Below, piece after piece: positions 1,484-37,600 of a stretch of 64,000 nucleotides of DNA. The translations under genes and the position numbers were made by a program. Numbering within the stretch: position 1 is the stretch's first letter; every line of letters starts with the position of its first letter. Source of the DNA: Laetmonice hystrix (Eukaryota); NCBI GenBank assembly GCA_965235115.1, contig OZ249436.1, positions 53,568,001 to 53,632,000 of the forward strand, given 5' to 3'. The notes beneath the pieces were generated by a model, which was not told the DNA's origin, made no database searches, and saw nothing but the letters and a program-made list of their open reading frames with translations.

Positions 1484-1906
1484 GTCAGCAGACCGTTTTG
1501 AAAGTCTGAAATTAAACAGGAGCAAAGTATATTGCCAGACTGATGCATCTTATCCCATTCATCCTTATTTTAATTTAATTTAAAGTTTCTTGTAATATTT
1601 TATAACATAGCGTTAGATCTACGGTTTGAGCACGGAAACTTAGGTGAAACTGTAACAGGAACAATTTTGTGAAAGGTATTTCGATTTCCATGTTCTGCAT
1701 TTTGGGATACATCTCACTAAAGCAAAGATGTCTTTGCAAGAACAGTGCTAAAAGAGTGCATGCAGTGAGGACTTATTGAAACGGCACGTTTCCAGCGACA
1801 TCTTTTTGGCTTGTTGAAATGCATCCCTAGTGTGTGGTGATGCCGTCAGAGGGCGCGGCAGGCTGCGCTCTGTGCTGTTGTTGACGGAGTGGCTCCATAT
1901 TTGCAG

Positions 1907-2044
1907 GAAAACGTTCACCTGGAAGAGAAGCTGGGCGAGACTAACTACCAGCTGCTAACGTTAGCCGAGGAGCACCAGGAGATTCAGGACAGGTCACGGG
2001 GTTACAAGGACGATATCGAGCAGGAGCGTCAGGTTAACGCCCAG
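1907..2044 (+). CDS. RAB11FIP3/4: Rab11-FIP3/4 coiled-coil exon, ENVHLEEKLGETNYQLL...EQERQVNAQ
   Basis: ttgcag acceptor, CAG|gttaga donor, 138 nt, phase 0-0, heptad-rich. Confidence 0.88.
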
Positions 2045-2168
2045 GTTAGATCACACACACTTTATAACTTAAGACTACCCTTTCATATGGGGAATTAAAT
2101 CACATTTTCCTGGCACAAAATTCCAGGTTTTCCTGGCACAGCTCCTTATATACACCCTTCGTTTGCAG

Positions 2169-2318
2169 CTACTAGATGAGTTAAGCAAAGAGCTTGAAGA
2201 ATTACGAAACTACAAATTAGAAAATGAAGGAAGAATTCGATCACACAGTCAGTCGCCAGCTGATCTGAAAATGGCCCACCGAAAAGAATTAGAACTGCAC
2301 GTTGTCCGACTGAAAGAA
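2169..2318 (+). CDS. RAB11FIP3/4: Rab11-FIP3/4 coiled-coil exon, LLDELSKELEELRNYKLE...ELELHVVRLKE
   Basis: tttgcag acceptor, GAA|gtaagt donor, 150 nt; matches the FIP3/4 pattern LIEDLRKQLEHLQ...ELEQEVRRLKQ. Confidence 0.9.
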
Positions 2319-5072: not shown

Positions 5073-5213
5073 GAGAATGCCAAACTCAAGGAGCAGAACG
5101 AAGACCTCCATGTACAACTACTCAACAAGCGACTGGAGGAGGGTCGCAGCTTACTCCAGGACAACGCTGAGGCTTCGCTCGCCGCCGAGCTGGAAACGCT
5201 ACCCCGGGATGAG
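5073..5213 (+). CDS. RAB11FIP3/4: Rab11-FIP3/4 exon, ENAKLKEQNEDLHVQLL...SLAAELETLPRDE
   Basis: ttcttacag acceptor, GAG|gtacgc donor, 141 nt; matches DNRNLKEQNEELNGQI...SLAAEISSVSRDE. Confidence 0.92.
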
Positions 5214-8200: not shown

Positions 8201-8246
8201 TGAACATGAATTGTTAACCATTTGAATTTTCTATGTGTGTTTTCAG

Positions 8247-8402
8247 TTGATGAAGGCCTTGAAGGACCAGCAAGAGGCAAATCAGAAGTTACGAGAGTAC
8301 ATTGACCGGATCATGCTACAGATAATCGAAAAGGACCCGTCCATTTTAGAGGTGAACAATCACAAAACGAATAGCAGCAACAAAGCAAAGAAGAAGGCAT
8401 AG
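8247..8402 (+). CDS. RAB11FIP3/4: Rab11-FIP3/4 terminal exon: FIP Rab11-binding domain, LMKALKDQQEANQKLREYIDRIMLQIIEKDPSILEV + NNHKTNSSNKAKKKA*
   Basis: tttcag acceptor; signature L..YID.I...I.E..PSILEV of the FIP-RBD; TAG at 8400-8402. This exon is absent from the supplied ORF track. Confidence 0.95.
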   Translation: MMKALKDQQEANQKLREYIDRIMLQIIEKDPSILEVNNHKTNSSNKAKKKA

Positions 8403-15599: not shown

Positions 15600-16342
15600 A
15601 TTGGTCCATTCATAGACGTAGAGTTCGACATGGTCCATACTCAGTGGTGGACGCTGCCTTGATTGGTGGCCATTGTTCATCTGTTTCTCGCCAGATGTCG
15701 CCTGATCCTACTGCCGGTCGGGGCCCGAGCTTCGTGACCCAGCCAGGCTGAATTTCAAAATAATGGCCGAGATCAGATGGCCGACGATCCACGCGCCCAG
15801 CTGGATCAACGCGCACTTAATCAAGAACCTAATGACAATTTAGTTTCCTTATCTAGCCCTTTGATGTATGTATTGTCATAGTTTATCTCGAACTCTGCAT
15901 GGCATCACTCTATCGCGCACTGCGGCCTCGTCATGTGACGAAACCAGCAGGTACGCGGCGTAGGAATATGACCCACCTAGACCGGCAAGTGAGGGTTCCC
16001 CAAATGCCGGCCAGACAGACAAATAGTGCATTGTATTTCCGTTGTTTTTATTAAATACTAGGATTGTTTTGCCAGCGACTTCCCACTCTGTGTATCACAT
16101 CTTTCTCTCCCCATCAGATGGTGCGTAAGGTTAAGGTTGTTAAGGGAAAGTAAATGGTTAAAGCGGTATTTTAATCCGCAGAGAAAATCCGAGTCGAGGC
16201 GGTGAAGAGGCCCTTCCTATTCACTGCCCGGTGTTTGGATTGGCGCGATTTCGAATCCGACCGGGGTGTTTGGCTCTGAAATTCTGCTGATTCCAAACGG
16301 ATAGCAATATCAATTTAAGAGCAGCAAGAATCAGTTATCAGA
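15600..16342 (+). promoter_or_regulatory. Lgl promoter region and non-coding first exon (5' end undefined)
   Basis: CpG-rich; inverted CCAAT boxes (GATTGG, e.g. 16238); consensus donor GA|GTAAGT at 16343 pairs with acceptor tttcag at 16560, just upstream of the ATG. Confidence 0.6.
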
Positions 16343-16591
16343 GTAAGTATTTTTCATTTTTCCTTAGGCGGGCAAATCGTAAATGCATCTCAACGGGATG
16401 GTTATTATGGGTTGGGGGGCAGTGACTTGGTTCACGTTGCCGCATCTTGGCCTGGGTTGACGGTCGATGTATCGACAGTCGGCTTTGTCTGTTGTGGCCG
16501 TGGGTGTGCGAGAAGCGGGTGCGCCAGAGTAACGTGGACGCGTCCTTTATTTAGTTTCAGGTGTTTCGCAAGTCACAATATCACCGACACC

Positions 16592-16681
16592 ATGTTGAGG
16601 AAATTCGGATTCAAGAAGTCGGAACCCAGGGAGAGTGAGGCCCGTTTGAAGCTGCAGAAGGAGTTGTTTGCATACAACCGG
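16592..16681 (+). CDS. LLGL1: Lgl coding exon 1, [30 protein letters not shown]
   Basis: gacaccATG; donor CGG|gtaggt; matches Lgl ...KLKQELFAFNK. Confidence 0.92.
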
Positions 16682-19600
16682 GTAGGTGTACATCTTGACC
16701 TCCTCAGCCGCCGGCAGGGCCGCCCCGGCGGATGGTCAGATGGTGCAACCCTCGCGGGTCTGCCCAGCCACAGGTGGGGTAGGGGTGACAAGACTGGGGA
16801 CAACATGACGCCGCACACACACTAGCCTGACATGCGGTCATCATTGCCAACCCGGCATTTATTGCCCATCCACGTCCATATATTTCTTTCATTTCTGAGA
16901 AGAAATGAAGGGGGAGAGTGAGGACGATTAATTAGGAACATAATAATGCCTGGTATTTTAGAAAACTTTTCATAATTTATTTAACTTTGTGGAACTGGTG
17001 TGTTGAAACCGTAAACTGGGTGCATATTTATAAATAAAACAATGGGGAGGTAACTGTCCTAGATGACTGGGACAGCCATATGAAAGTTGGATGGGAAAAA
17101 GGTAGACTGAGCCCTGGAAACCAAAGCCCAGTTATTTCAGTATTTTCATGAATATATTTTATAAGATAGCGGTTTTCTAAGCCTAAGGCCTAATCTTTGA
17201 AAATGTCAAAAGTTTGAACAATAGTAACATTCTTTAAAAAATGGCAGATGCCAACCAGGCCCAACCCTAAACTCTGATCAGAGACGTCTAGTTCAGTTTT
17301 TGTCTAATTCTAGTATTTGATCATACACACAGATTTTTGAATAGATTCCATGTGAATAGATTCCTTGTGTCATGTGAAATTGTATTTTTCAACTATAGGC
17401 CCTATAGTTGTAGGCCACCCAATAAAATGGTACATTGTTCAATTTCTGAGTGTATTTTATTTGAGAAAGGTAAATTTGCATCAAGGGCTACAAACTCTGA
17501 TAATATTTGCAGGCTGTTCAAAATGCTGCATGCAGGAGATTTTTTTGCAAGTTTAAATTTAAACACTGTTTCCGTTATGTAATTTATCCTAAATGTAGGC
17601 ATATGGCTACATTTAAGATAAATGAGATGTTGATATGTGAAACATCTAGGCTTTATTCTGATCCTTTTTTTTATAGTGTGTGGAGCATGGCTTTCCTCAC
17701 AAGCCAAGCGCCCTGGCCTATGACCCAAAGCTCAACCTGATTGCTATTGGGACCAAGAATGGATCTGTTAAAGTGTATCCTTTTTGATAATTTTAACTCA
17801 GGGATCCAGTTGATGCAAAGTAAGTCTTTATTGTTCACAATATCAAAAACTGGTGGAAAGTTACTATGAGTTGACAAGTTGAATTTTTAGATGGTCAATA
17901 TCGTTTTTGTGCTATGAAACATGCATCCAATTGCTATTTCCCATCAGAAGTCTGTAAGTACAAAAATTGCAGGTTGCAAAATCGAATGATGAATTCATGA
18001 GTTTACAAAGATTTTCAGGGGTTTGCGGTAGAGGAATTAGTTGATTGGTGTACGTGTATTTATCTTGGACAGACCAAGCTGCTTTGTTGGCTTTCTGTAT
18101 AGTTAAAGACCCGTGCAGTTTTCAGTTAATGGCTTGTAACATTTGGTTCATATACTCTAATAGTAATAGGGGCCCAAGGCTGTTACAAGCCTCTGTACCT
18201 TTGGTATTATAATGTGTTAGTCATAACTGGGCCATGAATTCCATGGCCAGATGCATACATGTGCAGCAGACAAGTTGACCGGACAGCAGACTTTAGCATT
18301 TCTGTGGTCAAGTTCTGTGGACTAGATTCCGGCATCATATCATCAGTTGTGTGTAGCAGTCAGAATAGGATTTCACTAAAACTTAATGTGCTATAGATGG
18401 AGAAAGAAAAAAATTTAAATGAGCTTGTGGCTTTTTTTTCTAAAAGTAATGTTCAATAATGTTTCTGGTCAATACAAGGAGGGATATTGATTTGGAAGCT
18501 TAGATTTGAAATCCAGAAGACTGCAACTGAGGGGCATGGATTAAAACTGTCCTAGAAGGGGAAATAAAGAAGATGTTAGTGTGCCGGAATGGTACAACTT
18601 CATCCAGGATGTTGAGTACAAAGTTGACTGTGACAGTGAATCCTTTTGTAGCTCTAGTCTATTGGAGTTGTGTGAGCGTGTTGAGGTCCTGCATAGATCT
18701 GTTGCCTATCGAAGCTGTTATCGAAATCTTAATCATGAAGAGGTAAATAGACCCTTTCCAGTCTGACCATGTACCCTGCCAGGAGGCTGGGGGGTTTTAA
18801 AGCCAAAATTACACACAAAAATTCACAGGAAAAAACTTTTGATATTTTAAGCAGGTTAGATATGATTGGAAACATATATATATCATTATTTTGGTAGGTT
18901 TGACTGTTGACCCTGGCCTTTAACTTTTGACCATTCAAAAAAATAAAAATTCATCCCTTAGTTTTTTTTATCCTGCATGTGATATGGGATAGGACTGGAA
19001 AGGTTTAAAGGGAGTCATAAAATTCATTTTTTTCGATTTATGGCAGTCTTAGAAACATATGATTCGCATACCTTGGACTCCCAGTAACATCATGTGAGAC
19101 TGTTATGGCCCAGCGACCAGTATTTAGTAAGGAAAATATGCCAAATCTCTCGCAAATACGTAGCTTAGAATTAGCGAGCGGCCCACAGGATATTTGAGTT
19201 GGCCGCGGTCGGGCGATGATGACGCGTGATCACGTGACTTCCGGGTGTGGAAGGGAATCTCCCTCTAGTCTAGTGTTGACCTAAATACCGCATGTACACC
19301 CGGAAGTCACGTGATCACGCGTCATCATCGCCCGACCGCGGCCAACTCAAATATCCTGTGGGCCGCTCGCTAATTCGGAGCTACGTATTTGCGAGAGATT
19401 TGGCATATTTTCCTTACTAAATACTGGTCGCTGGGCCATAACAGTCTCACATGATGTTACTGGGAGTCCAAGGTATGCGAATCATATGTTTCTAAGACTG
19501 CCATAAATCGAAAAAAATGAATTTTACGACTCCCTTTAATACTAGTATTTGCAATGTCTTCCTTACAATGATGTTTTGATAATATAGTTTTAAATACAAC

Positions 19601-22600
19601 ATAGCTTTTCCATCTTGTTACCATTTTGCGTCAGTCTACAGTAAACTGTGCATATAATTTTAGTAAAATAAAGAAAAGGTTTAACTGTGACATGAGAGTG
19701 AGACTGAGAGTGCAAATTATGTCAACGGTGACCTATTAGAAACAGAATTATGAATACGGAGGCTCAGAAGATACTGAATCTACACTGATCTGCCTGCTAA
19801 AACCCTTGACCTTGTTTTTAAACAGCACTTGACTGAGGTATCTCCGTAAGCCATTGGGTTTCTGGAGCAGGCAAGGGGTGAGAGTGTCAGGGGTTAGGCT
19901 GGCCTGGTGGGAAACACATGGCGAGCTGCCAAAAAAGTGGGTGTGGTCTCCAGCAGAAAGAAACCATATTATATATTAACTTGCTGATCAGACAGTGCGC
20001 TGAATAAAGAGGCAGTTGACATGGTTGTAGGTTTGAAATATATCTTGAAACTGTGTCAGATTTGGCTTGAAGAAAGGGTTTAGTTTTTTACACAGTTTCC
20101 TGTTAAGACTTATGACTTGAGATAGAGATTACTAACAAAAGCATTAAATTAAAAAAAAATTGACATTTTTCAAATGGATCAAATCCTATTGTGAGATCAC
20201 TGGGTAAATCTATGTATCCCAAAAGGCAAAACCAGATCTACCCCATCGGTATTAGGCATTGGAATTTGTACAGAAGGGGCCAGCTGAAGGGTTTCACACA
20301 TGTTTATGTTTGCCATGATGGGCATGTTGAATGGGCATTACGCCTCCCGCCGAGGGCTGGAATTTGTAGCTTGGAATCATGCTTGTTGAGAGTAACGACC
20401 CCCAAAGGAGCTTTACCCGAGTAGGGCCCTCTCCCAGAGGTGGGCGCCCCCCAAAGGCTACAGACACTCGGGAGTTGACACATTAGGCGGTCATACCCGC
20501 ACTCAGCAGGTCAAGTAGCCTCCAGATAGGTCATATTGGCCAAATGAAGCAATGCCGACCCGAATCGGATGTGTGTTTAATTGTAAGGGCTTGACACATG
20601 GCAGGGTGACACACGTCCCTTGGGGGATTTAACTACAATACTGGACTGAGTTTTATTCTAGTCACGAAGCAACACACCTGTTTCATTGATTTCACGTTAC
20701 TTGATTAAACAGGTCACACTTTTGATTACACCAGACGGCCTGTTCTGTGTCAGTGAAACTGACTAAATAAATATAATTACAGACTTAATGGTCTACATGT
20801 ATTCAAAGAGTATATGTAAGTTACATGTGAAGAGAATCAAGATCTTGCAAAATCGGCATGAATTCTGTTAGGAACATCGATTAAATAACAAATGGTTCTT
20901 TTAAAAGTGTGGAGTATTTTAAAAAGAAGGCAGTGTAGCACAGCTTAGCAGAACGACCATCTAGCTGTGTATGGCATTTACACTTTAAAGGATATTTAGT
21001 TGTTCCAGGAGTATTTTAATGTGGACTACACGTATAGCAACCGTATGTACATGTATTTGTTTATTTTTATGGAAGCAGTGCATGACGGCAGGTGTACATG
21101 ACAAAGTACTCATTTCTGTGATGGGGGGGGGGGGGGTAAATTTGATTCATAAGTAGGGTTACAGTAAGTACCAGTAAATGCTTGGAGAGGGAAAAAGGAA
21201 AAATTTAGGAATTTAGGTAATTAGGAGGATAGCGGGTAGATCCAGACTGTAGATTAAAGTCTGTTTGACCAAGGAGACTAGTCTAGTCTCGTTGGTTTGA
21301 CACACGTAAATCCGTACACTTTTAGAGTACCGTACCCCGTACTTAAGTCCACATTGAAGAATGGACACCATACTTTCAATTCTTCTACATTTTCCTGTTT
21401 CAACAGTGCCTCAGTGAAAGCATTCTGTTTTTACCTCAAAAATGTTGCAAAGTGACAACTTAATGCAGAACAAGGCTTGAAAGAAAATATTAATCCTATT
21501 ACAAGCAATTGCTGAAGCACCTCGTAGAGTCGGGTAACACTGGCATGCCTAAAACTGAAAAAAACCTGATTCTTTGTTGGTTTTTATGGGAAGGATTTCA
21601 GTTTTGGACCATTCCATCTGCTCCAAGTGACATTTGCAGGTGTCAGGAAGAACTATTTTAAGATGGTCAGCGGGTCCCCAGTTGCCGGACCGTCTGCACG
21701 GTGTTTTCATCCTTAAGGCCTGCCCTAGAAGCGTCTCCGCGTTGTTGAAATACAGAAAGAGAGAGATCATTTGCCGTTTGAATGACTTGAATGATCCCGG
21801 TACTGAATGGACCTGTCACCTCGGCCCATCACCTGACTCAGACCGGCACTCTACATCAAGTCCCTGCAGACTTGTGTTTGCTTGAACTGTGGCGAGCAGT
21901 AGGTAGAGATTGAGTAGGGAGAGAGGGGGTTTCACGATGTGGTCCAGGGATCGCCCCCGGGGGACAAAATAGATGAGTGCATGGGCCCTCTCCCAAACAT
22001 AGCTCTGATTGGCTTGTTGTTGGAGAGGGGCACAGAGTCAGTGAAGTGGAATTAGAGAGATTATAATTTTACATTATAATCATTAGTTCCGGTACCCTGC
22101 AGATTATTACACGGAGGATAACTTTTGATAAAATTAGCGATGACTGTTAATGGTATGATTTGTACTGTAGATTGTGCACACGGAAATGGCAAATTGGCAG
22201 TGACGAGTCATGATGCAACAGTTGAGCATTACATTTTGGCCTATCTTTCTAAAACTACTATACATTCGTATGCCAAAAATGTAGGTCTTGGGGGTAATGC
22301 AAAATATTGCTGTGGTCTGATTGGCTCATTGCCACTGTGGTAGTATTTAGTAGTTCTGAAGCAAGGTGTAACATTGCCCTAGAACCACTCTAGAAGTCAC
22401 AGGAAACAAGTCATCGGGAAGATGACCTTTGTTGCAGAAAGGTGCCAGTCGCATTCTTCTGGTTTTAGCAGAAGATGCAAGAACAATACATATTTATGTG
22501 CGTGCATCTGAGCAGAGAGCCAGGTCCATCAACTCATGATTGTTAAAATCCATTTGTGTTAGCTTGACTTGTGATTCTGGGGTGCGTTTCACGACAATGT

Positions 22601-25600
22601 AACCCTGTTGTGCGTAAAAATCCTCCTTGAAAATACATTGGTGTTTACGATCTACGACAAGCTTACGGCAGGTGCAGTGCACTGCTGAGCTGCAGTAGGC
22701 CACCATAATAGAAGGCAGTCCTGCAGCACCGAAGAGTCTTTTGGTGGCGCCCTGATGATAGATACAATTCGGTAGAGCTCCTGTAGTGTTATCCCCTTGA
22801 TGTCGCATCAGGAGAAAAGGGGCAATATACGTGCAACTGCTTCATGTATTCTAAAGGAAAGGCCACAAACCATTAGTTTAAATCACCATGGTTGGAAAAA
22901 TATGTATGGCACGATAATCATATACCAGAGATTCGCAGCCCATGCTTGGTTTAATATTTGTATTAAAGCTAAAAAATACACCTAGGACAAAAAGTGTTGA
23001 CGAGTCTGCTTGTCACTGTCTATGAATCGGTACTTTAACCTGAAACGTCATACGGGAAATAGATGTGGTTAGTCTAGAAAAGCTGTGGTTATCTGCTTCA
23101 CCTTACTGTTTTTTCACACCTAGATCAAATTTGACTATTCCATACTGGCGCTGGGAAGAGTGGGGCTGATGTTGTGCCAACGTAGGTATTACTGATTTTG
23201 ATAATTATTTATCTTAGTAGGCCTATATTCTTGGACTAGTCTCCAGAATCTAGACCCAGTATATGTGTTTTAAAACAAGATTGTTTGTGTAACAAGTGTT
23301 TTTATTTGCTCCTGGATCCAGAACACTTGTCAAAAACGAGGCAGACTCAGACTGTCAGACAGAGGTATAAAGAGAGGGGACTTGGTACTGGTGAACCGGG
23401 ATCAAATGCCTTGATCATCTAGGTGTACTTTAATAGAAGCAGAGATGGCCAGTGGGTATGGCTTTGGAAGAATTGACCCACATTATGGATAGTGATGTTG
23501 ACTGAAGTGGTTGGTGGGTGCCAGGGCAGACAGACATCTGAGCGCAAGTTCAGGGTCCATGCACATTGGCATCGCGTATATAGAACACTGTGAAAGGGTG
23601 AAGGCCGATGTCTGTGCAGGGACAGTGGCTTGGACTCCACTACCGGTCCCCGGCGTCGTGTTTAAAGAAATGTATGCAAATGTCCTTCATATGGAATTAT
23701 GAGTGGTAACACAGCGGACATAAATGGAAGGTGATATTTTTTCTAAAGTCCGTTATCAGTTGTAGCATGTCGCAGATGCGGTGGGTTTGTTTGTCAGCCT
23801 GAATGTTTGTTCATAGGCATATCTTGGCTTGGCTATACATGTATACTAAAATATGGGGCTAGCTGTCGTGTCGAACTGGTGACTCACACAACTGGGGCAT
23901 AAATCAGCCAGACTGTCTGACCCTTGTTACAGCCCCAGCACAATTTGCGAGCAGCTCTATATATTTGTAAAGGCATTACGGGGTAGTTGTAATTTAAAAA
24001 AAGAATCACTAGATCCTGCTCAGGTTGAATGAAACTCTTCAATGTTTAAACGTACCGGAATGTCGTGTAGGTACCTCAAAAATAACTATGAATGGTGTAA
24101 TATATATTGTACAATGTACATCAGTCCTCGAAAAAACCCACGTCCGATCGTCCGAGACGACTAAAAAATTGCTTTGGACGAGTAAATATTAATGTCAGTC
24201 GTCCGACCGGACGAGTAAAGCAAAGACAAAGAAAAAAATCAACCAGGCCTTGTTCTCGGCCTAAGATCTACGGTGACCACATGCCTCCACTTTGAACCAC
24301 TTTTGGGGTGACTCTGACTTTCACGAAACCGAGTGTAACTAGTAACAAAACCGACCGAGACCAGCTGGTTGTGCCACCTTGTGACAGGATAGTATATTTC
24401 CCTTCAGCACCCCCATACAGAAGACATGCAAGACTTATCAGTCGGCAATGGGGTCAACTTTAATGATATAGAGGCACATTAGGGTGAATACTCGCTGTTT
24501 TTTGCGGATGCCAGAGTGTAACAGTTCCTTCCAGAATTACTTATTGTCATTGATTAATTGGGGTTCACACCATTATTATCGATAAAATCTCCACTATCTG
24601 TAGAAATTACAGGCAAGGACCTAATTAGATGCAATACAATCCAACTTGCCAGTAACAAAATCTCTGGCCATACCATGAATTGCCCAGAGGGGGGCTGTGT
24701 GTAATGACCTATAATGCCTCAATTGGCTTGGGACCACGTGTGAGCACTGTCACTGAGTGAGCAGTTGTTTACAACAAGCAGCACTTGTCAATTTGGCGCT
24801 GGCTTAATTGATCATGAGACCAACAGTATAGTTTAGCCAGAGAAAGCAAATAAAAGCACTAGATTTAATTGATAGACTTGTCACTTATAAACAGATCACA
24901 GGTTCTATGATAAAACAATAAAAACGAGGCTTTTGTTTCATTCCTATTTTATTAAATACCTTTAATAAATAAGTAGAGAATTCAGTGTAATTTCAGTCAA
25001 AGTTCTACAGATGAATTTGGGCAAGTGAAAAATAAGTCGGGCAAGTAAAATTGGGCTACTACTTGCCCGATGGGCAAGTAGAGTTGGTAGATTTTTTTCG
25101 AGCCCTGTACATGTTTTATGTGAGATTTTCTTTTGCATTACAAAACGCGAGTGGCCGGCTTCAGTGACGTTTACTACAAAGCATGCACCGTTTTACAAAT
25201 TGAACCACAGCAACAAATGTAATTCGATACCGACATGGGATCGTGCAGTGTACGAGCAGTTCCTTATCGTGCCGTTAGGATTGCGGTAATGCAGGTAGAA
25301 GTTAGGCCAACCTAAATGTTCAAAGGTTGCATCACATACATATTAGCATGAAGTATGTTGGTGGAAAGTACGTCAGTTGCGTCGTGCAGTATGATCATAC
25401 GAATTGCATTTAAATTGTGACCATATATACACCCACCCACCTATGACTAACGTTTATAATAATAATCGAAGTACCTGGCTGGTTTCTGCCAAGTGGGTGA
25501 GCCACCTTTCAGGTCAGAAGGTGTTTCACTCATATTGACACTTTGATAAGAGAGACCAGCTGTCACAGTAATATTGACTTTGTATTCCAGTACCTCACCC

Positions 25601-28600
25601 GCTGTCTGATTCTGTGAGGTTCTAGTGCGCTGTTTATGGTAGCCAGAGAAAGGCATACTACACACTGCCAGTGCCACTCCTCCCGCAATAAATTCGTTTT
25701 TACAGAAAAGAAGAAAAGAACCTAGCTTTGCCTGTAAACTTATGATAAATTGAGAGTAAGACATTGACATGGGCAGGAAAAGACTTGGCCAAAGAGTAAA
25801 GTATAGTTGCTGTGTATGGTATCCAGAAAATGAGAACTATTGAAGGGGAATTGTTTAAGGTCAATAAAAAAAATTGCCAAACGATGTAGTGAGGCACAGT
25901 AATCGGTAAATTTAGAATAGTGAATTCAGTTTTGTTTTAAATTAAAGGTCTTTAGTTTAGCCCTCTCTTACTTAGCTATTTTTTGTTGACCAGATTGTTA
26001 GTTGATAATGATAGGAGATGTGGTATGTTAGATTACTTGCATGTTGTCAACTCCAAGACTAATTTGAATCTAAAAGAGAGATGCTCTCGCCCCACCTCCT
26101 CTCACCCCCTCCACGCCCCCCCCCCCCACCCCACCCTCAAACTCGCACACAATTCACCCTGGGCGAATACATAGGAAGGGATATCTTTACAAACCCGTAT
26201 CAAAGAAGCTTTCAGTAGCGGTCATGAAAGAGGCTACCTTCCCAGGCGGCCGGTAAATGCCACCGAACAGTCAATGTCAAAGTGTCTTAAAGTTGGTGAC
26301 CTATATCTGTGGCGGCGGACCCATTGAATGGGAGAAGGAGAGGAGCATCCTTTGCTGAAGTCGGTCACTCCTTTCCTTGGGCAGCATCACACGACTGACT
26401 GGTGACCGGTGAAAAGAAGTTTTGGTGCAAGCTTGGTGCAGCTTGTGACAAGCAGGGGGGCACTTTGTGAAAGACTCCCGTCAGGGGAGTGTACGTGAGG
26501 ATCAGCCAACAGGTTTAATAATGGCCACTGCCCAGATCTGAGTTGTTCTTGATGTTGTTTATGGTGTCGGGTTGTTAGTTGCAGTATTTGGGAGACACAT
26601 TATTAGTGCTATGTGGAGCGGGGTATGGCTGATGCGCTAGTCTCCTGAATTAATTGGTCTAGGGTGTGAGTGGCCGCATTTAGCAGCACCGGTTGGAGCA
26701 GGACGGAGGTGACGCAGTGTGACCAGAGAGATAATTAATTAATCTAATTCCAATCCAGGTGAAGTTACAGTGACATGACAGTTGCTGGTCACATTGTAGT
26801 CATTCATGTCCTTTGGCCACTGACCTCTGTCTAGACCTCATCCTGTTAATGCTAAACGGCGCCTTTTCTAAAGGCATGAAGTTTTAAAAGGTTGAGTCGC
26901 AATATACTGGGCAAAGCTTTTGGTGGTGCAGTCTATCTGTATCTATTTTTTTGGGGTGGGGTGGGGGTGAGGGGGTGGGGGGTCTTGGGTGGGGTGGGGA
27001 TGTGGATGGGTGTTGGGGGGGGGGGGGTGGGCGGGTGGGGGTCTTGGGTGGGGTGGGGGGGTGTTATATGTGGATGGGTTTGGGGGAGGGGGGGGGGGGG
27101 TCTTGCTGTATGCCTATAGATTTGATTGGTTGACCTGGACAAGGCGTTAAGTCACTATCATCCATCAGGTTAAGCTATAAATTTAGTACAACTAGACATT
27201 GATGATATATTAGCCCATTAGTCAGAGGATCATTTTTTTGTCAGCAGGCCTTGTTAATTCTCCCGAGCTTCCACAGTTGAGCACTCCAAACGTGGAACTC
27301 CACTTTGCCAGTTGCTCGCCTGTACACAGAGTAAGGGGGTACTTAGACTGGCCGGACAGCACAGGACATACTGCAAAGTGCAAATGGTACAATTGACAGA
27401 TCACTCAGACACTAGCCAGCCGAGTTAATGCTTTGACACAGAGGAACATTTTTAAAAACGTTTTTGATCGGTGGAAAATTATTTCCTTCAGTTTCAGAAG
27501 ATGAAAGAGTATCTGCGGTAGTCAAATTTGTCACGGACATACCTTGGGTGTCTGTGATGCTATTTATAGAGGGAATGAAAGGGGTTAACGCTTTCTGAGG
27601 CCAGGTCGTATGCGCGCTCGTGACTGGATAGGAGAAGTGCATGGCCGATTTTAGAAAATGTTGAGCTCTCACTCAGCACTACCACAACCATTGGCTGTGG
27701 TACTTTCCCAAAGTGAAACTCATCTTTGCAATTTGCAGAATGAACTGTCAGAAAGCTAGAGGAGGATAAGCTTGGGGTCGAAACTGTTAGTTTTTTTACG
27801 ATTTTTTTTTCTGACCCCAGTGCCCCTTTGGTTACCGGTACTTTCTAGGTCCCAGGTCATGTGATGAAGAGACTAGTAAAAGAAAATCGCGGATTTAGTT
27901 ATTGCCAACAGTATGGTCTGGTGGTTGGGGCCATGCTATGGGCCCCTTCGTCTACTAGGAGTGCCTCGCCCGATTTCTGGGTGATCAAGGGTTTCCCATT
28001 CCTGTCGGCCAAGGATATAATTACATCTCGGTAGGGAACCATTAATAGTACAGCAAGTATAAGATGTTGCCTATTGGATGCAGACGTTGACACAGGAAAT
28101 CAGATCTGATTCTTTGCTGGACATGAGAAGACCATGATAACTGGTCCTTTACATTTGAGATATTTGTGTATACAACCTAGGTAATGCTACGGTTACTGAA
28201 CGATGACATGAATCTTGTTTGAAAGAAGATCGTTCAATATAACAAATTTACACAGTTTACTTGCCAAGAAGGTCAGGTTTATAAAGAGATAAGAACTTGG
28301 TAGCCAGTGATGAACAGTTGGTCTGTTGGGGGCGAGGTAAGTCAAGATGGCCCCCATGTGTTGCGTGGGATATCCACGACATACATGTGCACTTCATAAA
28401 CCACTGAAGAAGCGGCAGGCGGGCACCTTTTATTGCTTCCGGGGCCATATAACTGGTACCTCACTGTGATATAACCGTAAAATGCAAATTTCAGACTGGG
28501 CCACAGTGTAAACAAACCTACTTTTTTTAAACCATATAATAATGAGTTGTAATAGGCTGCCCTTTGAGTACGACATAATATTAGCCGGTTGAGGTTGGGC

Positions 28601-31600
28601 ATGATGAGGCGTGTGTGTGTGTAGGCCAGACTCGGCACTGTCTGACCGGCCGTGGGAGCCGGGGGCGTTGTGACATGGTGCCGGTAGTTGGGGAGTTCAC
28701 AGCCGCCGGGATGGAGGGCAGTCACATAAATACATGTATTTGGGTGGGGTGGGTTGGGGAGTGGTGCTGGCGGTCGGCAGGCAGGCAGTGCTGGCCACAA
28801 TCCAGGTGGTCGGTCCGCCGGCCGGCCGGCTGGCCGTGAAGGGTGGGCCTGGCTCCGTGACTGCCAGACACAGACCACCCAGACGGTCGGTGGGTTGGTG
28901 AAGAGAGGAACGATTAACCTATGGGGTCGCTTTTGATGTTTATAACCTCGTTTACTTTCGCTTAAAAACCTCCCAAAACATACCAGTATGTAAAAAAAAA
29001 CGGTAGCAGATGTTTTTGTGGAAAGAATTATGGTGGTGGACCGTAGTTTCGCTTCGATTTTGAATTTATGTTTACTTGCAATCGGCAAAAGATTGTAAAT
29101 TTACGTCAGTGGGTACATGCTGTTTGTGTGTGAGAGAGCTCAGGTTTATCGTACCGGGTTTGATCGGGAAGGAGATGGCTATGCATGAATACAACCCGGT
29201 GGCGAATCGCAATGCTGTGAAGTAAAACATTTTGGAAAGTATGATTTTTTTTCTCTCCGATCTCCTAAATACGTTTTCGGCAAACCTATTGCTGATGGTA
29301 TTAGCACCTCAATTATAAGTATTTGCTGGACGTGTGTGAATATTGGCAGTCCGGACCAAGTTGGTGCAGCCAGGCTAAATGCTGGATCTGTAAGTAGCAC
29401 AGGGAAATGGTACCGAAGTGGCGGCGTTGGTTGCTGGTGGAGTATGGAGCAGTCACTGTTCCTGGCGATGATCCCTCACGGCCTAGGTAAGCTGACCTTG
29501 GCCGGGGATCATCTGCTCCATCCAGATGGCGATGTACGTAATGTCATACAGCTGTGACTGGCGATCACTTGTGTTTACAAGCATGATTCGAGAATTTCAC
29601 CGCCTTTCTCTTGATGACTGGATAAAGGAAAAGTTCTTTGGTGATGAGTGATGCGCAGCCGTACGACGTGGTAGTGTAATGTAGATGTCGCATTTACGGA
29701 TGAGGAGTCTCATGGTGGGTTTCCCCCATTCGTCACACAGACAACACTTCACCTGATGGGATTTTGTCTTACCTGAAGGAATTTTACTGTTAGCACTAAA
29801 TGACCCAGTTGCTGTACATGGCAACAGTTGGGTCGTCATAACTCGATGGTATGAGCCCTGGTTTCTGCTCGATTGCTGCAGAGGTAATGAAATATTAAAA
29901 TGTGCCCTGGATGGGGTCAGAGTCTTATGAAAGATTGACAAATTTCCGAATGTAGGGTAGGTTAACTACTAGAAATGGACCTTCCTGCTGAACTAAAAAC
30001 CTCTACCAGTCCAAGCAAATGGACCTCGTTATTTTCCTCGCCTTTACCGATTTGATCACAATGTTCAGGCCTGTGAGTAACTGGGGCCATGCTGACCAGA
30101 CCAAGTTTCTTGATAAAAATGAGGATAAAGAAGAAATTCTGCATTAAATACAAATTTAAAAAAGAGAGAAAAACTAGAAACAGACTTGATCAGTCTTGTT
30201 CAAAGAGGTGGAAGAAGATCTTACAAATGACATTAGCAAAGAACAAATTTTGGAAGTAAATTGTAACAAATATGTGAAGCAGAATATAGAAAGGTTTATT
30301 TTTTATGTAGGGCCTACCACCAGTTGGTAAAGAAAGCCGGCCCATCTCTACCTGTTGATTATGCGTCAGGCTGTGGAAAGCCGGACTGAGCAATGAGTAA
30401 AACTTGGGGCAGGAATAACATCCTGTTATTCCATGTATAAGTTCTCAAGTTGACTGTAGCACCTAATCGGCGCGTGTGGTGCACGTGCTGGGGAATTCCA
30501 TGCATGAAGCATTTGTTCGGGCGCCTTTGAAACCTCCACCAAGGCCAGCTGGTAGGGAGCGAACTGGGCTGCCAACAGAAATAGGATGAGTCATGGCAGT
30601 AATAATAATAACACTTGCTCTAACTATAGGTCTGCGCTACAAGTGTCTTGGATAAGATGCACCGGACTATGTCAGGTGACAGTTGTTGCTATGGAGATGG
30701 AGATGGGGGTGTACGAATTGACCTGACCTAATTTGAAGGATGCCAGACACGGTGGCGCCGCCGTGTCATGGCTGGCGCCGTGTAACTCACCTGCCATGGA
30801 TACTGGGAAAACACTAGTTGCATGGTCTAATAGTGAGTATGGATGCATGAAATGAGAACAAAGATAACATCGCGAAACTCGGTAATGGCTGGAACGTGAA
30901 AACATCTTCAAGATTGATTCTTTTACTGGTTCTTGGTTACTTGGTCGATATAATATTAAAAAGCCTTCTTGATTGAATGATTTTTGAACGGAATAGATTG
31001 AAATCCAGATCGTCTCTGTGAATGGTGACTGATAGAGCAAGTCGGCCTTGGCACCTGGGTAGGGGTACACAGGTAAGGTGGGGGGTGGGGGGTGGGGGTT
31101 CACTCAGACAGCACGGAGCCAAGAGTGGGGTCTGAGGTGACACAGCCCCACAGTCACGCCAGGCCCCAATCACCGGCAGGGCAGCCTCCGGGTGTGGGTG
31201 TGAGAGGAGCCCACTCAGACTGCAGGGGACCAGTAGACCAAACTGCAGGGATCCAGTAGACGGGTGTGACTTGACATGGCTTCACGGTCACGCTAGGCAC
31301 CATTCACCGGCAGGGGTTGGTATGAGCAGTTATGCGTACACTTAGACTGCAGGGAGCCAGTATACGGGTGTGATGTGACATGCCATGCCCCAATCACCGG
31401 CATGGCAGCTCTGGGTCGGCCCACTCAGGGAGTTGGGGGGGGGGGATCCTTGCCGGGTCCTTTGCATAACCAACCATCCAGCAAATATACCTAAGACGTG
31501 GTAATGAGCTTGACGTAGAAAAAGTTCCGTCTCAGGCTTCGATTTGAAGCATTTAATTTAATTTTAAATCTCATTGAAATACATGAGACATTCCCACGAT

Positions 31601-34600
31601 CTACCAACTGTGTAGAAATGCGTGTCACAGTGTGGTGTGTTGTTTATGATATGATTGGTATCAGGACCCCCTCCTACCTGTGCTCGGCCTAGCATGGCCT
31701 TCTGTGTTTATTGTACAAATTTAGTCCTGGTACTTTTTAGATTATTGAAGTGTTGTCATCTGACGCAGTAGCCTGAGGGACTGCTCAGTGTAGCTAACTC
31801 AATTTGTTTCACTGCTGATTTAGCTTTTAACGCTGGAAGTTTTTATTAGCCGACTGGCAACCAAAAAAATCCGATGGCCATAACATGAGTGATTATAGCC
31901 GACAACCCACACGTCTAGACTTGGAGCGCCAGTCCTCACGAATGGTGCAAATATATAGCGTGCCTATGCAGTCACAGACATGACATTGTATGTGCATTAT
32001 AGACGTACTCTGTTTTGTTTCAAAATCGATCGATGTATCTGAGCACTTTTGATAGTGTTAAAATCACAGTCCTTGTGATCTGGGCTGCATCACTGCATGG
32101 GAGTTGTCATCGGGATTGTCTGTATCATATTTAATGGACAGGTCGGCAGTTGTTTGGAGTACATTGTTTGTATGTACTGACTAGTACTGTTTCCCTGAAG
32201 CTTTTTGAGAACGCTCGCAGGGTGGGGCACCGCTCAGGAAATGCGATCGTAAAATCTTGTTTATTTGGGCAAATCAATTAATTAAGACGCTGACTCCAAA
32301 TGAACGGTCGGTGCATGTCAGTTGTGCCATAAAATTGTTAGCTGCTAAACAAAAACCTCAGACATATTTGGAGTCCATCAAAATTGTTCGTTTTTTTCGG
32401 GGCCTGGCAAGTCGCTACAAACAGGGGGTGGGTGACCTCAAACGGTGATCACACACATTGAGGAATGTCAGCAATTTGAGATCTAGTCAGGCCGGAATGT
32501 GGGAAATCTGACCCGACTTATTGTTGACCTTATCCCACAGCTTGGTGATATCAGTGTGTCTCAATAGTATAAATGATTCCTGTGGGGCAGTAGACGGGGG
32601 ATGGGCCATTTCATGAACTGTGGGATGCACAGGAAGTATGGTTAGCCTTGTTTAATGGTCAAGTTTGAGGAAATGACCCATTGCTTCGTAGTGACAGCAT
32701 AATGACTGCTAAAATTTGACAGAATCCCAAGTGTTTGAAAAGGCATTGTTCAAAGTGGAAGTGTATTTCACTCCGGGTGAAAGGACATACGAGATACAGG
32801 CACTAAAATGATAGGGGTGCACACACATTGGCGGGTCGGCTGGCCGTGGTATTGTGAACAGCATAATTGTAGAATAGGGGTAAAGTGAAATGGTGAAACG
32901 GGGGCACCAGTTACTGTAGGTGGCCTGATCCTATTACAGAAAGTGTTGTTATTAGTAGGCAAGGAGAATAAGGATAGTGGGGGCGGGGCAGATACTAATC
33001 GGCGGCTAATTAGCAGAAAGTCATTATAGAATGACACCATCCGTGGCGACCGTGTCTCCAGCGTATGAATGGTTTTGATTTTGATGTAAAGTTCACAGCT
33101 GAGATCTTAGCGACGAAAGAAACATCACAGTCGTCCAGACATGATAAGGCCAAAAAAAAAAAAGTTTCGTTTCTTGTCCCTGCGCACGTCACCTAAAACC
33201 CCCCGCGTCAAGTCTTTTATTTTCAAATCCGACTGTTTTATAATGGTGGGCAGTGTAGCGCTGTGACAGAACGTTGCAACAGTTCTTTGGCGTTGGCGTT
33301 TTTCTGTTAGTCTTATTGCTTTTTATGTGAGTTTTACACATTCTTTAATGAAAACACTGAACATCAGTGCATTTAGTCTTTTCTTTAAGATTTCTTCATG
33401 TACCCAACAGCAATTGCATTCGAAGAATCGGCCGTTGTCTCGTTGCATCCAAAAAAAAAAGAAAGATGAAAAAAAACGCGTCACCGCACCAAATTTTTGA
33501 TATGAAAGGAGAAGAAACGAAACTTTTTTTTGTTTGGCCTAAATCCTACTGCAGGATTTCGATGTTCAATATCTATATTTAAGATAGCGAGTTTCTTAGA
33601 CAACAGTCTACGACCAGTTTTGTAGTCTCGTGTATTAATGCATGTCGGTCGAATGCCAATACACAAAGACCAATTTCTGTCCCAGTTCTTTGTACCTTGA
33701 ATGCCCAATAGTAGAAATAAATTGATTAAAATACAAGAAGTGCACAAATTATGAGAGCGAGACTAATTGAGTTCAACCCAGAAAATAGGTCTGCTAATGA
33801 AAGAAAGCACGTTAAGTCAGATCAATATTGTTGAAATATTTATAAGTTGTGTGCAGACTTTCAAAAGGGTCCATGTGCACTATGTCAGGGGACTGCCCGT
33901 GTTTTCGCCTTGAACATGGCCTTAGAGGCCGACATGGCATACAACCATCAACACGTACCTCATTCAGATACTATTGCCTGTCCTGTTTAATAGGGTCCTT
34001 CACCTAGATTGTTGGCCTGACATCGAGATCATGTCTTTTGTCACGTACACAGAGTCGTGCTCTATCTGAAGAACCATCAGACAACAATCATTTCCATATT
34101 TTAAGATGAAAAAAATTAAGTGAGTGAAGGAGTGCTTCCCATCTCAAAGTTTGATTGACATGGTTAGACAGGTGTCTCCATCAGTAAACGTCCTTAAGTA
34201 TTCTCCCTTCCCCCTGAATTCGTTCTGTTCTGTGTGTTTTGAAACTTCCTTGACCAGTGTGTTCAGTCTAGGAGCTCCCGGTGTAGAGTTTTCGGCTCAG
34301 CATGAAGAAGATGTCCAGATCACCAAACTCTTCTTCCTTCCGGAACAGGTACGTTCGTCATGTCCTTGCAGATAAAGCTTCAAATCTGTACACGAATTTA
34401 AGGTTTTAATTGGAAAATGCACTCAATCAGCTGAGGTAGATGCACTGAGCTCTGCCGATCTAAATCTGTGGAACTCTTATTGCTGATTGGCTCTCATCAG
34501 TACATAAGTTGGAGAATATTAGGAACCAAAAGGAAAAATGTTTAGGTGTTGAAAGGGGCTCCTGACTTGTGGATAATTTAAAGTTTCAAGAATGTGTTTA

Positions 34601-37600
34601 GATGGTTTTGTAGATAACTTCGGGTTGTCGGCATGTGGTGTTGTGTTTGTAGGGCCGGCTGATCAGTCTGACCAACAACAACTCGCTCCACCTGTGGGAG
34701 GTGAACGTTAAGGATGGCAAGTCGGAGCTGGAGGAGGTCAAGGAGTTCTCGATGGAAAACAGGTACACAACACACATGTTTGAATCCGGCTTTGGTTTCT
34801 TTGACGTATTTACTGCATACTAACTTCCAAAAAAAGGTTGTGGTTACCTATACGTGAAGGCGCTCCACTCTGGAAAAGAGATTGTTTATTTTCCTGGAAA
34901 GAAGTCGTAAGAGGAACAAACAAAAAAAAACAGAAAAGAAAACTAGGTGTACTCATATTTAAGTGGGTGAATTTGAATGAATCTTTAGGAGGCGGCGGTA
35001 TTGGTTGGTTGGGAAGTGGGATTTCTAATTAAAGTCAAAATTTTCCCTATCATCCAAGTGGATAGAGTCATGAACAACATCAGACCGAAATCTCAGCCAC
35101 CAGGGATTTCTAAATAGTAATACGTATCCTAATAAGAACCATATTACTCTATGATTTGGTCGTTATGACTAATTAGTCACAGGTCGCTGTCTGGGGAAAA
35201 GTGAATCGTCTGGAGGCTGTTAATGCAAAGAGTAGAGTTTGAAGGCTTACACGGTCAAAGAGGGCACACCTTCACTCCCGTGAACATGTATTCCAGGGTA
35301 TTATTGCTAGATGTTGGCCTGACCCGAAGACACGTTTTGCAATGAGGCCACTCACCGTACGAGCTGCTTTTACATGTAGACTGATTGAAAAAAGTGTAAC
35401 CTCAGGAGAGACCTTCACAAGTGGGTCAGGTTTCCTGACAGCTGTGACATCACTGAGTCATAACAAGACTTGTTGGCAGAAGTGTAAGGCTCAAGATAAC
35501 ATTCGGTTTTGACCAATTCTCATGCCGAATTGACTCGACTTTCTTCCTAGAGCATGCTAGGAGATTTATGTAGTCGAAGTGTTTCAAGAAGAGATAGCTT
35601 GGCAAGAGTGGTTCAAGAGTAGTGCAGTTGTAAGGGTCAGCATGTATAAATAATGAGCTGAGCCAGTACCAGAAGACTAGTCTTGCCTGCAGGATGGCCA
35701 GTTCCGAGCCAGATATAAAATTGTTTGCTCACTCTCTATGAAAGCCATACATCAACAAGTGGCAAGCATGTATGCCAGATGCAAGTATTCAAAAGAATAA
35801 GTAATGTTTCTAATTTTGGATTTTATTTCTTGGTGTCTTGAAATATGACCATTGATAATGGTATACATGTTGTACATGTACATGGTAGTTGTGCATAATT
35901 AAACAATAAATTTCACAATTGTCTAAAATGTAGATAATTCATAATGCTTCTAGGCTGTACCTCCATGTTGCAGTTTATATTAATATTTTGCAATACGTAG
36001 CATCTTTTCTATCAGGTAATCATTCCAGAACCCATACCTCATTTTGATATTTATTTCCTGAAGTCAGTAATTTAATCTGATCTGCGTCAAATTAGGTGAA
36101 AAATCATCACCCCCCCCCCCCGCCACAGCCAGAACTATTGCATTCGTCATTGTTTTGTCTGTGCCAAGCTTTGCCCACTGTCGGTGAATCAGATAAAAAC
36201 ATATGGTAGTACTTCTAGAGGCAGGAATACACACAAAAAAACCGTTGCGTCATCTGGGGGCAGTTGTATGCACCCGTAATCTGTTGCAGACGGTCCCCAC
36301 TGTTGACTGAGGGCCTTATGGGCTCAATAACGAAATCTCTACAAATATAGGGATACTATGTTTGAAATGCTGTTCCTGTAAGAGAGTAATATACGTGTAA
36401 CAGTGACAGAATTTATTTGTATGTGCATTGTGTTTGCTGAAAATACCATACAAACCATTGTGTTAGTGTACTGTAGGAGTAAATTGCTGTACGAGGGAGG
36501 CGGCGTTACCCTGAGTGACGATGGGCGGGGAGGAGGGGTGGCGGCCCCGGTACCCGGTTAGGGTACACATGTTCACAGGCCGGTTACCGGGTCAGAGGCG
36601 ACAGGCCTCGATCCACGCCAGACACCATGGTGGCAGCGGCGGCTCCGAAAACAAAACAAAAACTGCAAGCTGCGCTTTGGCCCAGTATGCCATAGTATGC
36701 AATGGTCTCCGAATTGGGGGCATTCCCTGACAAGGAGCCCCGGCTGGAACGCCCTGCCCGCTCGCAGCTCCGCCCATCTCCGCCGTGGGTGGGTGGGTGT
36801 GACCCACTCGGTGCGGAGAGAGGCCCTTGAGATACCCGGCACCCCCGGCCTGGGACCTCGGCCGCTCTAACCGAACCCGTCATTTCCTCCCACGCTGCCC
36901 CCTTGCCAGCTCACCGTGGGGGTGTTTACGGGGTTAAATCACTTCACCTAGCCCCAAATTCAGGACCGTCGGAACATTAGGAACAGCCGCTGTCTGTATG
37001 CAAGTGGGGGCCGCGGGGACGGGCTGTGGGTGGACTAGTACCCACCAAGTTAACACCTTAGGAAGAGCTACCTTGGGTGTTGAATGTGGGTCGTGACCTT
37101 TGGTTTACCTGTAGAAACGGGCCCCGAGGGGCTGTGAGGAGGCCGCTGCCTGTCTTGGCCGTCGCCATAGAGACTGGTCTGTCTGCGTACTCATTGTCCA
37201 TCCTCACCAAGTCGGCCATCATTGAGCTGGCACTAACCATTCAATGACTTTCCATACAGTTCTATACACAAGTGACAATAAATCTTAAGACGTCTAAGGA
37301 TATAGTTTCATGGAACATTGGAGTGAAAATGGTGAATTGGACGTGTAGAACACGGCCAGGAGGGGCTTGGTGTACTCGGTGACCTTTGAGTTGAACTCTG
37401 CAGTGAAAACGCATTACTTGTTAGTTTTAAGGTCATCGAATGATTACAGAGATAGAAGAGATGAAAATGTCGGACCTTCAACCTCACGGAAATGTCTTTA
37501 GGTGGAAATAACATGCCGACATGAACTTGGATTATGTATCAAATTCCAAATTACTTGTCGGCTTGGACTTTAACTTGTTCATGCATCAGTAATTTAAACT

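Follow-up and report, generated by a model that had tools for sequence, protein, structure and literature searches.

The window, which denotes the whole 64-kb stretch of Laetmonice hystrix DNA that was analysed, carries a gene, hereafter lgl, for which a tblastn exon map revealed about 20 collinear exons spanning 16.6 to 58.2 kb. A total of 888 homologues of its protein were found, the best full-length ones being named lethal(2) giant larvae or LLGL, and the LLGL domain PF08366 was matched above the Pfam cut-off (E = 6e-07); on these matches the gene is assigned to the Lgl/LLGL protein family. Features of its 5' region are summarised in Table 1. The first two coding exons are separated by a GT..AG intron, the joint running from 16680/1 to 17676/7 in a contig of run X4, while the following intron, with which we are primarily concerned here, interrupts codon 63 in phase 2, after 30 and 32 complete codons and a further 2 nt. 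The first-pass annotation had described it as exceeding every other intron of the gene in length, and this holds within the window, where the next longest is about 8.5 kb.

Table 1. Features of the 5' region of lgl and of its U12-type intron (window coordinates; a caret marks a splice junction)
Feature	Position	Strand	Evidence or remarks
5' UTR exon of lgl	16225..16342	+	Contig of run X4, spliced; next intron 212 nt, GT..AG
Start-codon exon of lgl (ATG 16592-94; 30 codons, MLRKFGFKK...FAYNR)	16555..16681	+	Contig of run X4; U2-type donor GTAGGT
Coding exon 2 of lgl, 32 codons + 2 nt (GT)	17677..17774	+	Translation, tblastn, contig of run X4
U12-type GT-AG intron of lgl, 16,492 nt, phase 2	17775..34266	+	Motifs and contig of run X4
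U12-type 5' splice site GTATCCTTT	17775..17783	+	Read as AAAGT^GTATCCTTT; with exon flank, 12-mer AGTGTATCCTTT
Foldback MITE, piggyBac-type, 527 bp	19009..19535	.	Duplicated TTAA flanks; heterozygous in the sequenced animal; high-copy in the genome
Interspersed repeat, ~1 kb	24117..25114	.	Genome copies 96-99% identical
MITE-like repeat, ~400 bp, terminal inverted repeats	33140..33542	.	Inverted-repeat and genome-copy searches
Second branch-like motif TCCTTAA	34191..34197	+	
U12 branch-point sequence TTCCTTGAC, branch A 34253	34246..34254	+	Read directly
3' splice-site AG in use	34265..34266	+	Loose-end letters of the X4 contig
Coding exon 3 of lgl, T + 27 residues	34267..34348	+	U2-type donor GTACGT; translation, tblastn

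The 5' splice sites of U12-type introns need neither an exonic AG nor a G at position +5, and at their other end the branch-site consensus is TTCCTTRAC, with the branch adenosine located about 10-15 nt from the splice site and no polypyrimidine tract in between. The donor of the lgl intron agrees with the U12 consensus ^RTATCCTT(T) at nine of nine positions. Near the acceptor, the branch adenosine lies 13 nt from the intron end and the interval, CCAGTGTGTTCAG, lacks a polypyrimidine tract. A closer AG, at 34256-57, comes just 4 nt after the branch adenosine and use of the next one, at 34270-71, would break the reading frame. The first-pass annotation had also drawn attention to the second branch-like motif listed in Table 1 and, although the motif exists, its distance of 69 nt from the acceptor makes its use implausible and it is probably irrelevant to splicing. 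Exact-motif look-ups in the tables of the minor-intron database MIDB served as a stand-in for a formal classifier score. The 12-mer spanning the donor and its exonic flank is present 16 times in the minor-intron table, with scores of 95-96, and the branch core TTCCTTGACC also recurs in MIDB minor introns, for example those of CHD1L, PPP2R2C and DCAF1. The earlier designation of the intron as U12-type, made from this donor, the branch site at 34246-54 and the AG close behind it, is therefore upheld.

From base composition, about 1.2 copies of the donor 8-mer GTATCCTT are expected over the 64 kb of + strand in the window and one is found, placed precisely where coding exon 2 ends in frame. An expectation of about one copy leaves room for the motifs having arisen by chance, with the true gene structure differing through the use of other splice sites or the presence of extra exons inside the 16.5 kb. 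However, one contig of run X4, 1,300 nt long, matches 16225-16342, 16555-16681 and 17677-17774 and then reads TCTAGGAGCTCCCGGTGTAGAGTTTTCGGC, identical to the window letters from 34267 (34267-34296 compared). The junction 17774^34267, proposed in the first-pass annotation, is spliced exactly as predicted, as confirmed in this one assembled contig. Run X4 is not recorded as RNA and was taken to be so because of its GT..AG joints, the lack of cover of the intron and its origin in the sample used for the assembly. Its contigs show no cover in the unique intron part 17775-18947, and contigs cannot gauge levels, while cover of the intron by the DNA runs X1-X3 is unbroken over the mapped 6 kb on the donor side. 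Read mapping was confined to that side, stopping short of the remaining 14 kb (20001-34266), and the acceptor was identified from the loose-end letters of the contig; the dependence on a single contig and the restricted mapping thus leave the chance reading some support. Against it, the reading frame and the 10 residues encoded across the junction conform to the family pattern [KR]-[IVL]-[YFL]-G-x-x-G-V, representatives of three other phyla or classes have matching motifs at this site (see below), and neither a Pfam-recognisable open reading frame nor an Rfam RNA was found in the intron. We consider that this reading retains almost no probability and that it is already largely refuted.

The genome encodes all four snRNAs specific to the minor spliceosome, each above its Rfam gathering score, with 135.7 bits for U12, 101.9 bits for U6atac, which is present in two copies, 95.9 bits for U11 and 96.2 bits for U4atac. 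Boxes in three of these RNAs are complementary to the intron sites over six contiguous base pairs each, namely AAAAGG in U11, AAAGGA in U6atac and AAGGAA in U12, and the branch site pairs with the GUAAGGAA box of the U12 encoded in the same genome. Removal of the intron by the minor spliceosome is inferred from these complementarities and the splice-site motifs. U11, and later U6atac, would pair with the 5' splice site GUAUCCUUU and U12 with the branch site UUCCUUGAC, bulging the adenosine 13 nt upstream of the AG, and the minor spliceosome would then join 17774 to 34267 and restore codon 63 (GT^T, Val). An initial U12 call made from sequence alone has proved right, in a genome with a full minor spliceosome.

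It is also conceivable that the intron is a hybrid that carries U12-like motifs but owes its excision, in whole or in part, to the major (U2-type) spliceosome. The GT-AG termini are compatible with this, as are a branch sequence CUUGAC that fits the loose U2 consensus yUnAy and a pyrimidine-rich sequence 20-70 nt upstream of the acceptor; moreover, components of the major spliceosome have been proposed to contribute at the mouse Llglh intron (PMC8848931). The 5' splice site GT^GTATCC, however, fits the U1 target only at positions +1 to +3 and lacks a G at both -1 and +5, whereas all nine U12 consensus positions are matched and the identical 12-mer scores 95-96 in MIDB. Since the 13-nt spacing between branch site and AG, devoid of a pyrimidine tract, is also the U12 arrangement, such a hybrid mode is very unlikely and we favour removal by the minor spliceosome.

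Introns of U12 type were read directly at the same codon, and in phase 2, in three lgl orthologues. The shared position falls after the second base of the codon next to the conserved K/R of the motif G-x-x-K/R. In alpaca LLGL1 the intron of 1,824 nt reads AAG AT^GTATCCTTT ... CCTTGAC, 14 nt, AG^C TAC GGT; in l(2)gl of the hemipteran Halyomorpha it reads AAA GT^GTATCCTTT ... TTCCTTAT, 13 nt, AG^T CTT GGA; and in LLGL of the nemertean Tubulanus, where it is 94 nt long, AAG AT^GTATCCTTT ... TTCCTTGAC, 11 nt, AG^C TTC GGA. A tomosyn-like paralogue in L. hystrix shows the donor CGA AT^GTATCCTTT; its acceptor was not found within the 10 kb following the donor, nor in a 10-kb piece located 20 kb downstream. 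The Mytilus lgl locus was also examined and the sequence available there is without the N-terminal exons.

MIDB lists minor introns for both human and mouse LLGL1, LLGL2, STXBP5 and STXBP5L, with donors GAT^, GCT^, GCT^ and AAT^GTATCCTT, and these triplets are consistent with a K/R codon followed by an I or L codon split after its second base. The homologous site in LLGL1/2 and STXBP5/5L can be written GxxK(I/V/L)^(Y/F/L)G, and both the database entries and the direct readings in orthologues place a U12 intron at this position, which the first-pass annotation had singled out for comparison. The vertebrate LLGL1/LLGL2 minor intron (MIDB, Olthof et al. 2019, PMC6717393; mouse Llglh, PMC8848931) belongs to the same family and shares the codon position, phase and GT-AG subtype of the Laetmonice intron, together with the GTATCCTTT donor, a CCTTGAC-type branch site and a spacing of 13-14 nt between branch site and AG, as checked in alpaca LLGL1. 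Apart from length, the Laetmonice branch site differs in being nearer the consensus than those of mammalian LLGL1/2, and the spliced codons specify V-L rather than the I/L-Y of mammals. For the tomosyn genes STXBP5 and STXBP5L, the human and mouse entries in MIDB place the U12 donor in the corresponding R/K-(I/L) codon, as in lgl, and their introns are also long (15-87 kb), but they belong to a different, paralogous gene family.

The lgl intron is, therefore, already catalogued and ancient rather than a discovery. The supplement of the IAOD paper contains no LLGL or STXBP5 entries, and a literature search yielded no paper joining LLGL1 with a minor intron. Since the lgl intron is orthologous to the minor intron of LLGL1/2 and STXBP5/5L, it most likely predates both the Lgl/tomosyn duplication and the bilaterian ancestor. 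The earlier interpretation is partly supported, in that the U12 type and the junction were borne out and the proposed gating was not. Its concern that gene predictors may mis-model such an intron did not materialise for the nemertean, bug and alpaca orthologues, for which the NCBI models carry the correct junction residues. That the minor intron ancestral to the Lgl/tomosyn family persists in Laetmonice lgl has little import beyond correct annotation, and it provides one more record, from a spiralian, of an intron common to mammals, an insect and a nemertean.

Intron class, position and phase have been kept and length differs about 175-fold across the orthologues, and the only species-specific trait of the Laetmonice lgl intron is its length. 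The 16,492 nt compare with 94 to 1,824 nt in the orthologues read directly, and with MIDB values of 2,456 nt for human LLGL1, 2,011 nt for human LLGL2, and 1,787 and 1,079 nt for the mouse genes. Nevertheless, 16.5 kb is unexceptional among U12 introns because MIDB holds examples of 86,662 nt (human STXBP5L) and 32,462 nt (mouse Stxbp5).

The 240-bp hairpin noted earlier within the intron is real and corresponds to the foldback MITE of Table 1, its arms (19005-19248 and 19296-19539) being 244 nt long and 99% complementary. The MITEs mentioned in the same annotation were likewise recovered, along with other repeats, and the intron has grown to 16.5 kb within the lineage at least partly by insertion of young transposable elements. 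CpG-rich patches, also reported there, do exist as a few 200-bp windows, although these lie mostly within repeats and, with an intron CpG observed/expected ratio of 0.59 that equals that of the window, they were rejected as meaningful islands. Rfam detected no RNA family in the 64-kb window. Open reading frames of at least 90 aa in the intron look like chance occurrences and the two longest are without a Pfam match; a nested gene is, therefore, not supported. Taken as a whole, the observations are best explained if 17775-34266 is a GT-AG U12-type intron of lgl, orthologous to the minor intron of LLGL1/2 and STXBP5/5L, removed by the minor spliceosome and enlarged partly by young transposable elements, and we hold this to be very probable.

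A further proposal was that the intron acts as a rate-limiting switch, in which slow or regulated minor splicing over 16.5 kb would determine how much Lgl is made, and a retained intron would lead to a 66-residue stub or to nonsense-mediated decay. The general idea has been published (Younis et al. 2013, PMC3728624) as the model that minor introns are embedded molecular switches, for which the instability of U6atac and the retention of introns were measured in human cells. Laetmonice lgl resembles that model in having a lone U12 intron among many U2 introns and in that retention would abort the frame early. The intron occurs early in the gene, and reading into it yields V-Y-P-F followed by an in-frame TGA at 17785-87, which accords with the earlier statement that retention would truncate Lgl after about 62 codons. 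Moreover, four distant lineages and both paralogue families have preserved the U12 type here. Such conservation of type is, however, typical of U12 introns generally, and the brevity of the orthologous introns implies that length has not been conserved. One study reported splicing of the mouse Llglh intron to be insensitive to SMN deficiency, which lowers the supply of minor snRNPs (PMC8848931), and the X4 contigs, which in any case do not measure levels, leave the unique part of the Laetmonice intron uncovered. A switch function is consequently unlikely; the putative gating of Lgl output by this intron restates the general hypothesis of PMC3728624, and it would gain interest only with retention measurements.

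A more specific variant, which we consider extremely unlikely, would make lgl splicing allele-dependent, with presence or absence of the recent, heterozygous 527-bp MITE in the expanded U12 intron tuning the dosage of this tumour-suppressor and polarity gene via retention. Under this variant the MITE, whose position is 1.2 kb downstream of the U12 donor, would fold into double-stranded RNA over 244 bp in the lgl pre-mRNA.

The lgl intron at 17775-34266 (16,492 nt, phase 2) is very probably U12-type, as the first-pass annotation had proposed, given the donor and branch motifs and their spacing, read in the window, and an observed junction. A single copy of the motif GTATCCTT is present on the + strand of the 64-kb window and none on the - strand, against about 1.2 copies per strand expected from base composition, i.e. 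without enrichment, and the sole copy coincides with an in-frame exon end. The branch A (34253) lies 13 nt from the final intron base. An AG at 34256-57, closer to the branch A, follows it by just 4 nt, and the next one downstream of the acceptor (34270-71) would break the reading frame; therefore GT(17775)-AG(34266) constitutes the sole canonical in-frame pair. The second branch-like TCCTTAA reported at 34191-97 is also present, 69 nt from the acceptor. From these motifs, removal of the intron is expected to depend on the minor spliceosome.

Features of the lgl locus, its orthologues and related genes (window positions unless a contig of the same genome is given; a slash marks a splice boundary)
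Feature	Position	Strand	Sequence or description
Separate lgl 5' UTR exon	16225-16342
U2-type intron before the ATG exon	16343-16554		212 nt
End of lgl exon 2	up to 17774	+	...GGA TCT GTT AAA GT
Intron donor	starts 17775	+	GTATCCTTTTTG
Foldback MITE	19009-19535		527 bp, nearly all two 244-nt arms; TTAA duplicated at both ends
Interspersed repeat	24117-25114		~1 kb; copies 96-99% identical
MITE	33140-33542		~400 bp; terminal inverted repeats
Branch site	34246-34254	+	TTCCTTGAC, then CAGTGTGTTCAG
Exon after the intron	from 34267	+	T CTA GGA GCT CCC GGT GTA GAG TTT
Alpaca LLGL1			GTC AAG AT/GTATCCTTT; branch CCTTGAC, 14 nt to AG; AG/C TAC GGT GCC CCC
Halyomorpha halys l(2)gl			ATT AAA GT/GTATCCTTT; branch TTCCTTAT, 13 nt to AG; AG/T CTT GGA CGG CCT
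Tubulanus polymorphus LLGL			ATC AAG AT/GTATCCTTT; branch TTCCTTGAC, 11 nt to AG; AG/C TTC GGA AAG CCG
Tomosyn-like paralog, donor	G000:C6:23806186-23806278 (L006 1498-1600)		TCA TTG CGA AT/GTATCCTTTTCC
U6atac gene copies, two (101.9 and 70 bits)	G000:C4:22886946-22887061; G000:C12:25418485-25418597

The locus was found in four sequencing runs of one sample (X1-X4). X1-X3 cover both exons and introns and are DNA runs. X4 carries no RNA label and comprises 59 million letters of contigs; of the words making up an exon-plus-intron stretch, 24% occur in it, and its spliced joints and absent intron cover point to RNA. Among the contigs placed on window 16000-20000, an X4 contig of 1,300 nt and depth 100 aligns in blocks at 16225-16342, 16555-16681 and 17677-17774, separated by gaps of 212 and 995 nt, each GT..AG. 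Past 17774 it continues as TCTAGGAGCTCCCGGTGTAGAGTTTTCGGC, of which all 30 letters equal window 34267-34296, and thus the predicted junction 17774^34267 was observed, in a single assembled, spliced contig of a kind that gives no retention levels.

The lgl gene comprises about 20 collinear exons between 16.6 and 58.2 kb, located by tblastn with three homologues as queries. Its 147-residue exon at 52629-53069 matches Pfam LLGL and has 888 homologues; full-length ones, from molluscs, a nemertean, arthropods and mammals, carry the names lethal(2) giant larvae or LLGL, and the closest are spiralian, with 55-63% identity within that exon. A spiralian invertebrate is the likely source of the DNA. The region 15801-16700 looks promoter-like because its CpG o/e is about 1.0. 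The ATG lies at 16592, and exons 1 and 2 contribute 30 codons and 32 codons plus 2 nt, respectively, so that codon 63 is split by the intron. Retention would, as claimed earlier, truncate the protein after about 62 codons, with a predicted read-through of V-Y-P-F followed by TGA at 17785-87. The intron is indeed the longest in the gene, the runner-up (34764-43234) being about 8.5 kb.

Human and mouse LLGL1, LLGL2, STXBP5 and STXBP5L each have one minor intron in the MIDB supplementary tables, with donor 12-mers GATGTATCCTTT (LLGL1), GCTGTATCCTTT (LLGL2 and STXBP5) and AATGTATCCTTA (STXBP5L). Positional homology was compared on genomic DNA of alpaca, Halyomorpha halys and Tubulanus polymorphus, and a U12 intron does occupy the homologous position in LLGL1/2 and STXBP5, as read on DNA for alpaca LLGL1 and as the MIDB entries indicate for human and mouse. 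Relative to the three orthologues, class and place are kept whereas length differs (16,492 nt versus 1,824, 958 and 94 nt, respectively). A second family member of this genome, on contig 6, is similar to proteins named syntaxin-binding protein 5-like, and the homologous exon of this tomosyn (STXBP5)-like paralog ends at the same U12 donor; no acceptor was found for its intron (>10 kb from the donor). All those compared share phase 2 and a position in the codon after a conserved K/R, which marks the lgl intron as an ancient U12 intron shared across the Lgl/tomosyn family, and the spliced peptide at the junction fits the family variation [KR]-[IVL]-[YFLIHV]-G. The intron is already catalogued for vertebrates and is a known family feature.

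A search of the 627-Mb genome (35 contigs) yielded minor spliceosomal snRNAs that all exceed Rfam cut-offs: U12 (135.7 bits), U6atac (101.9 and 70), U11 (95.9) and U4atac (96.2). U12 starts with AUGCCUUAAACUAAUGAGUAAGGAAAAU, whose AAGGAA is complementary to the branch-site UUCCUU, while the following U is able to wobble-pair with G and the A stays bulged. The U11 5' end CAAAAGGGCC is complementary to the donor CCUUUU, and U6atac GAAAGGAGAGA to UCCUUU. Judged by complementarity, these boxes fit the lgl intron sites. A few positions 3' of the conserved 5' box distinguish the two U6atac copies.

A gate or switch at this intron, as first suggested, would carry over to lgl the general minor-intron switch model of Younis et al. 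(PMC3728624). SMN deficiency reduces minor snRNP supply, and in one study the orthologous mouse intron (Llglh) was insensitive to it, with major-spliceosome components suggested to help (PMC8848931). At 16.5 kb the intron falls comfortably inside the known U12-intron range, since longer examples in MIDB include human STXBP5L (86,662 nt) and mouse Stxbp5 (32,462 nt). The concern that gene predictors may mis-model the intron was not borne out in orthologues, whose annotations have the junction correct; prediction tools thus do not fail here as a rule.

Turning to the intron contents, the reported hairpin is real, with 244-nt arms at 19005-19248 and 19296-19539 that are 99% complementary, and the reported MITEs were located at two sites, together with a further interspersed repeat. 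This hairpin makes up the 527-bp element, a young piggyBac-type MITE; at least 40 of 762 candidate copies elsewhere in the genome show 99% identity, so the family was recently active. The empty site, with 19004 joined to 19536, also occurs among the X1-X3 contigs and the insertion is therefore heterozygous in the sequenced animal. A few CpG-rich windows exist, as noted earlier, but they lie mostly in repeats, and the intron as a whole has the same CpG o/e as the window, 0.59. Neither Rfam families nor a convincing ORF were found inside the intron.

Further into lgl, a tandem array (50 bp x 8.4 copies, 46195-46642) has a unit ending ...CTAACTTCCAG, and therefore a branch-like site and acceptor in each copy; its final copy adjoins the exon starting near 46633, and the array reads as a row of putative duplicated 3' splice-site cassettes. 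A second array, downstream of lgl at 62480-63626 (21 copies of a 54-bp unit, with 94% matches), has one frame open for 425 codons, with peptide unit ...PVTDCLVMPDRELMAVHA. Upstream of lgl, a + strand gene with coiled-coil exons (about 1800-8400) has a last coding exon ending ...YIDRIMLQIIEKDPSILEV, which we take to resemble the Rab11-binding domain of Rab11-FIP3/4.
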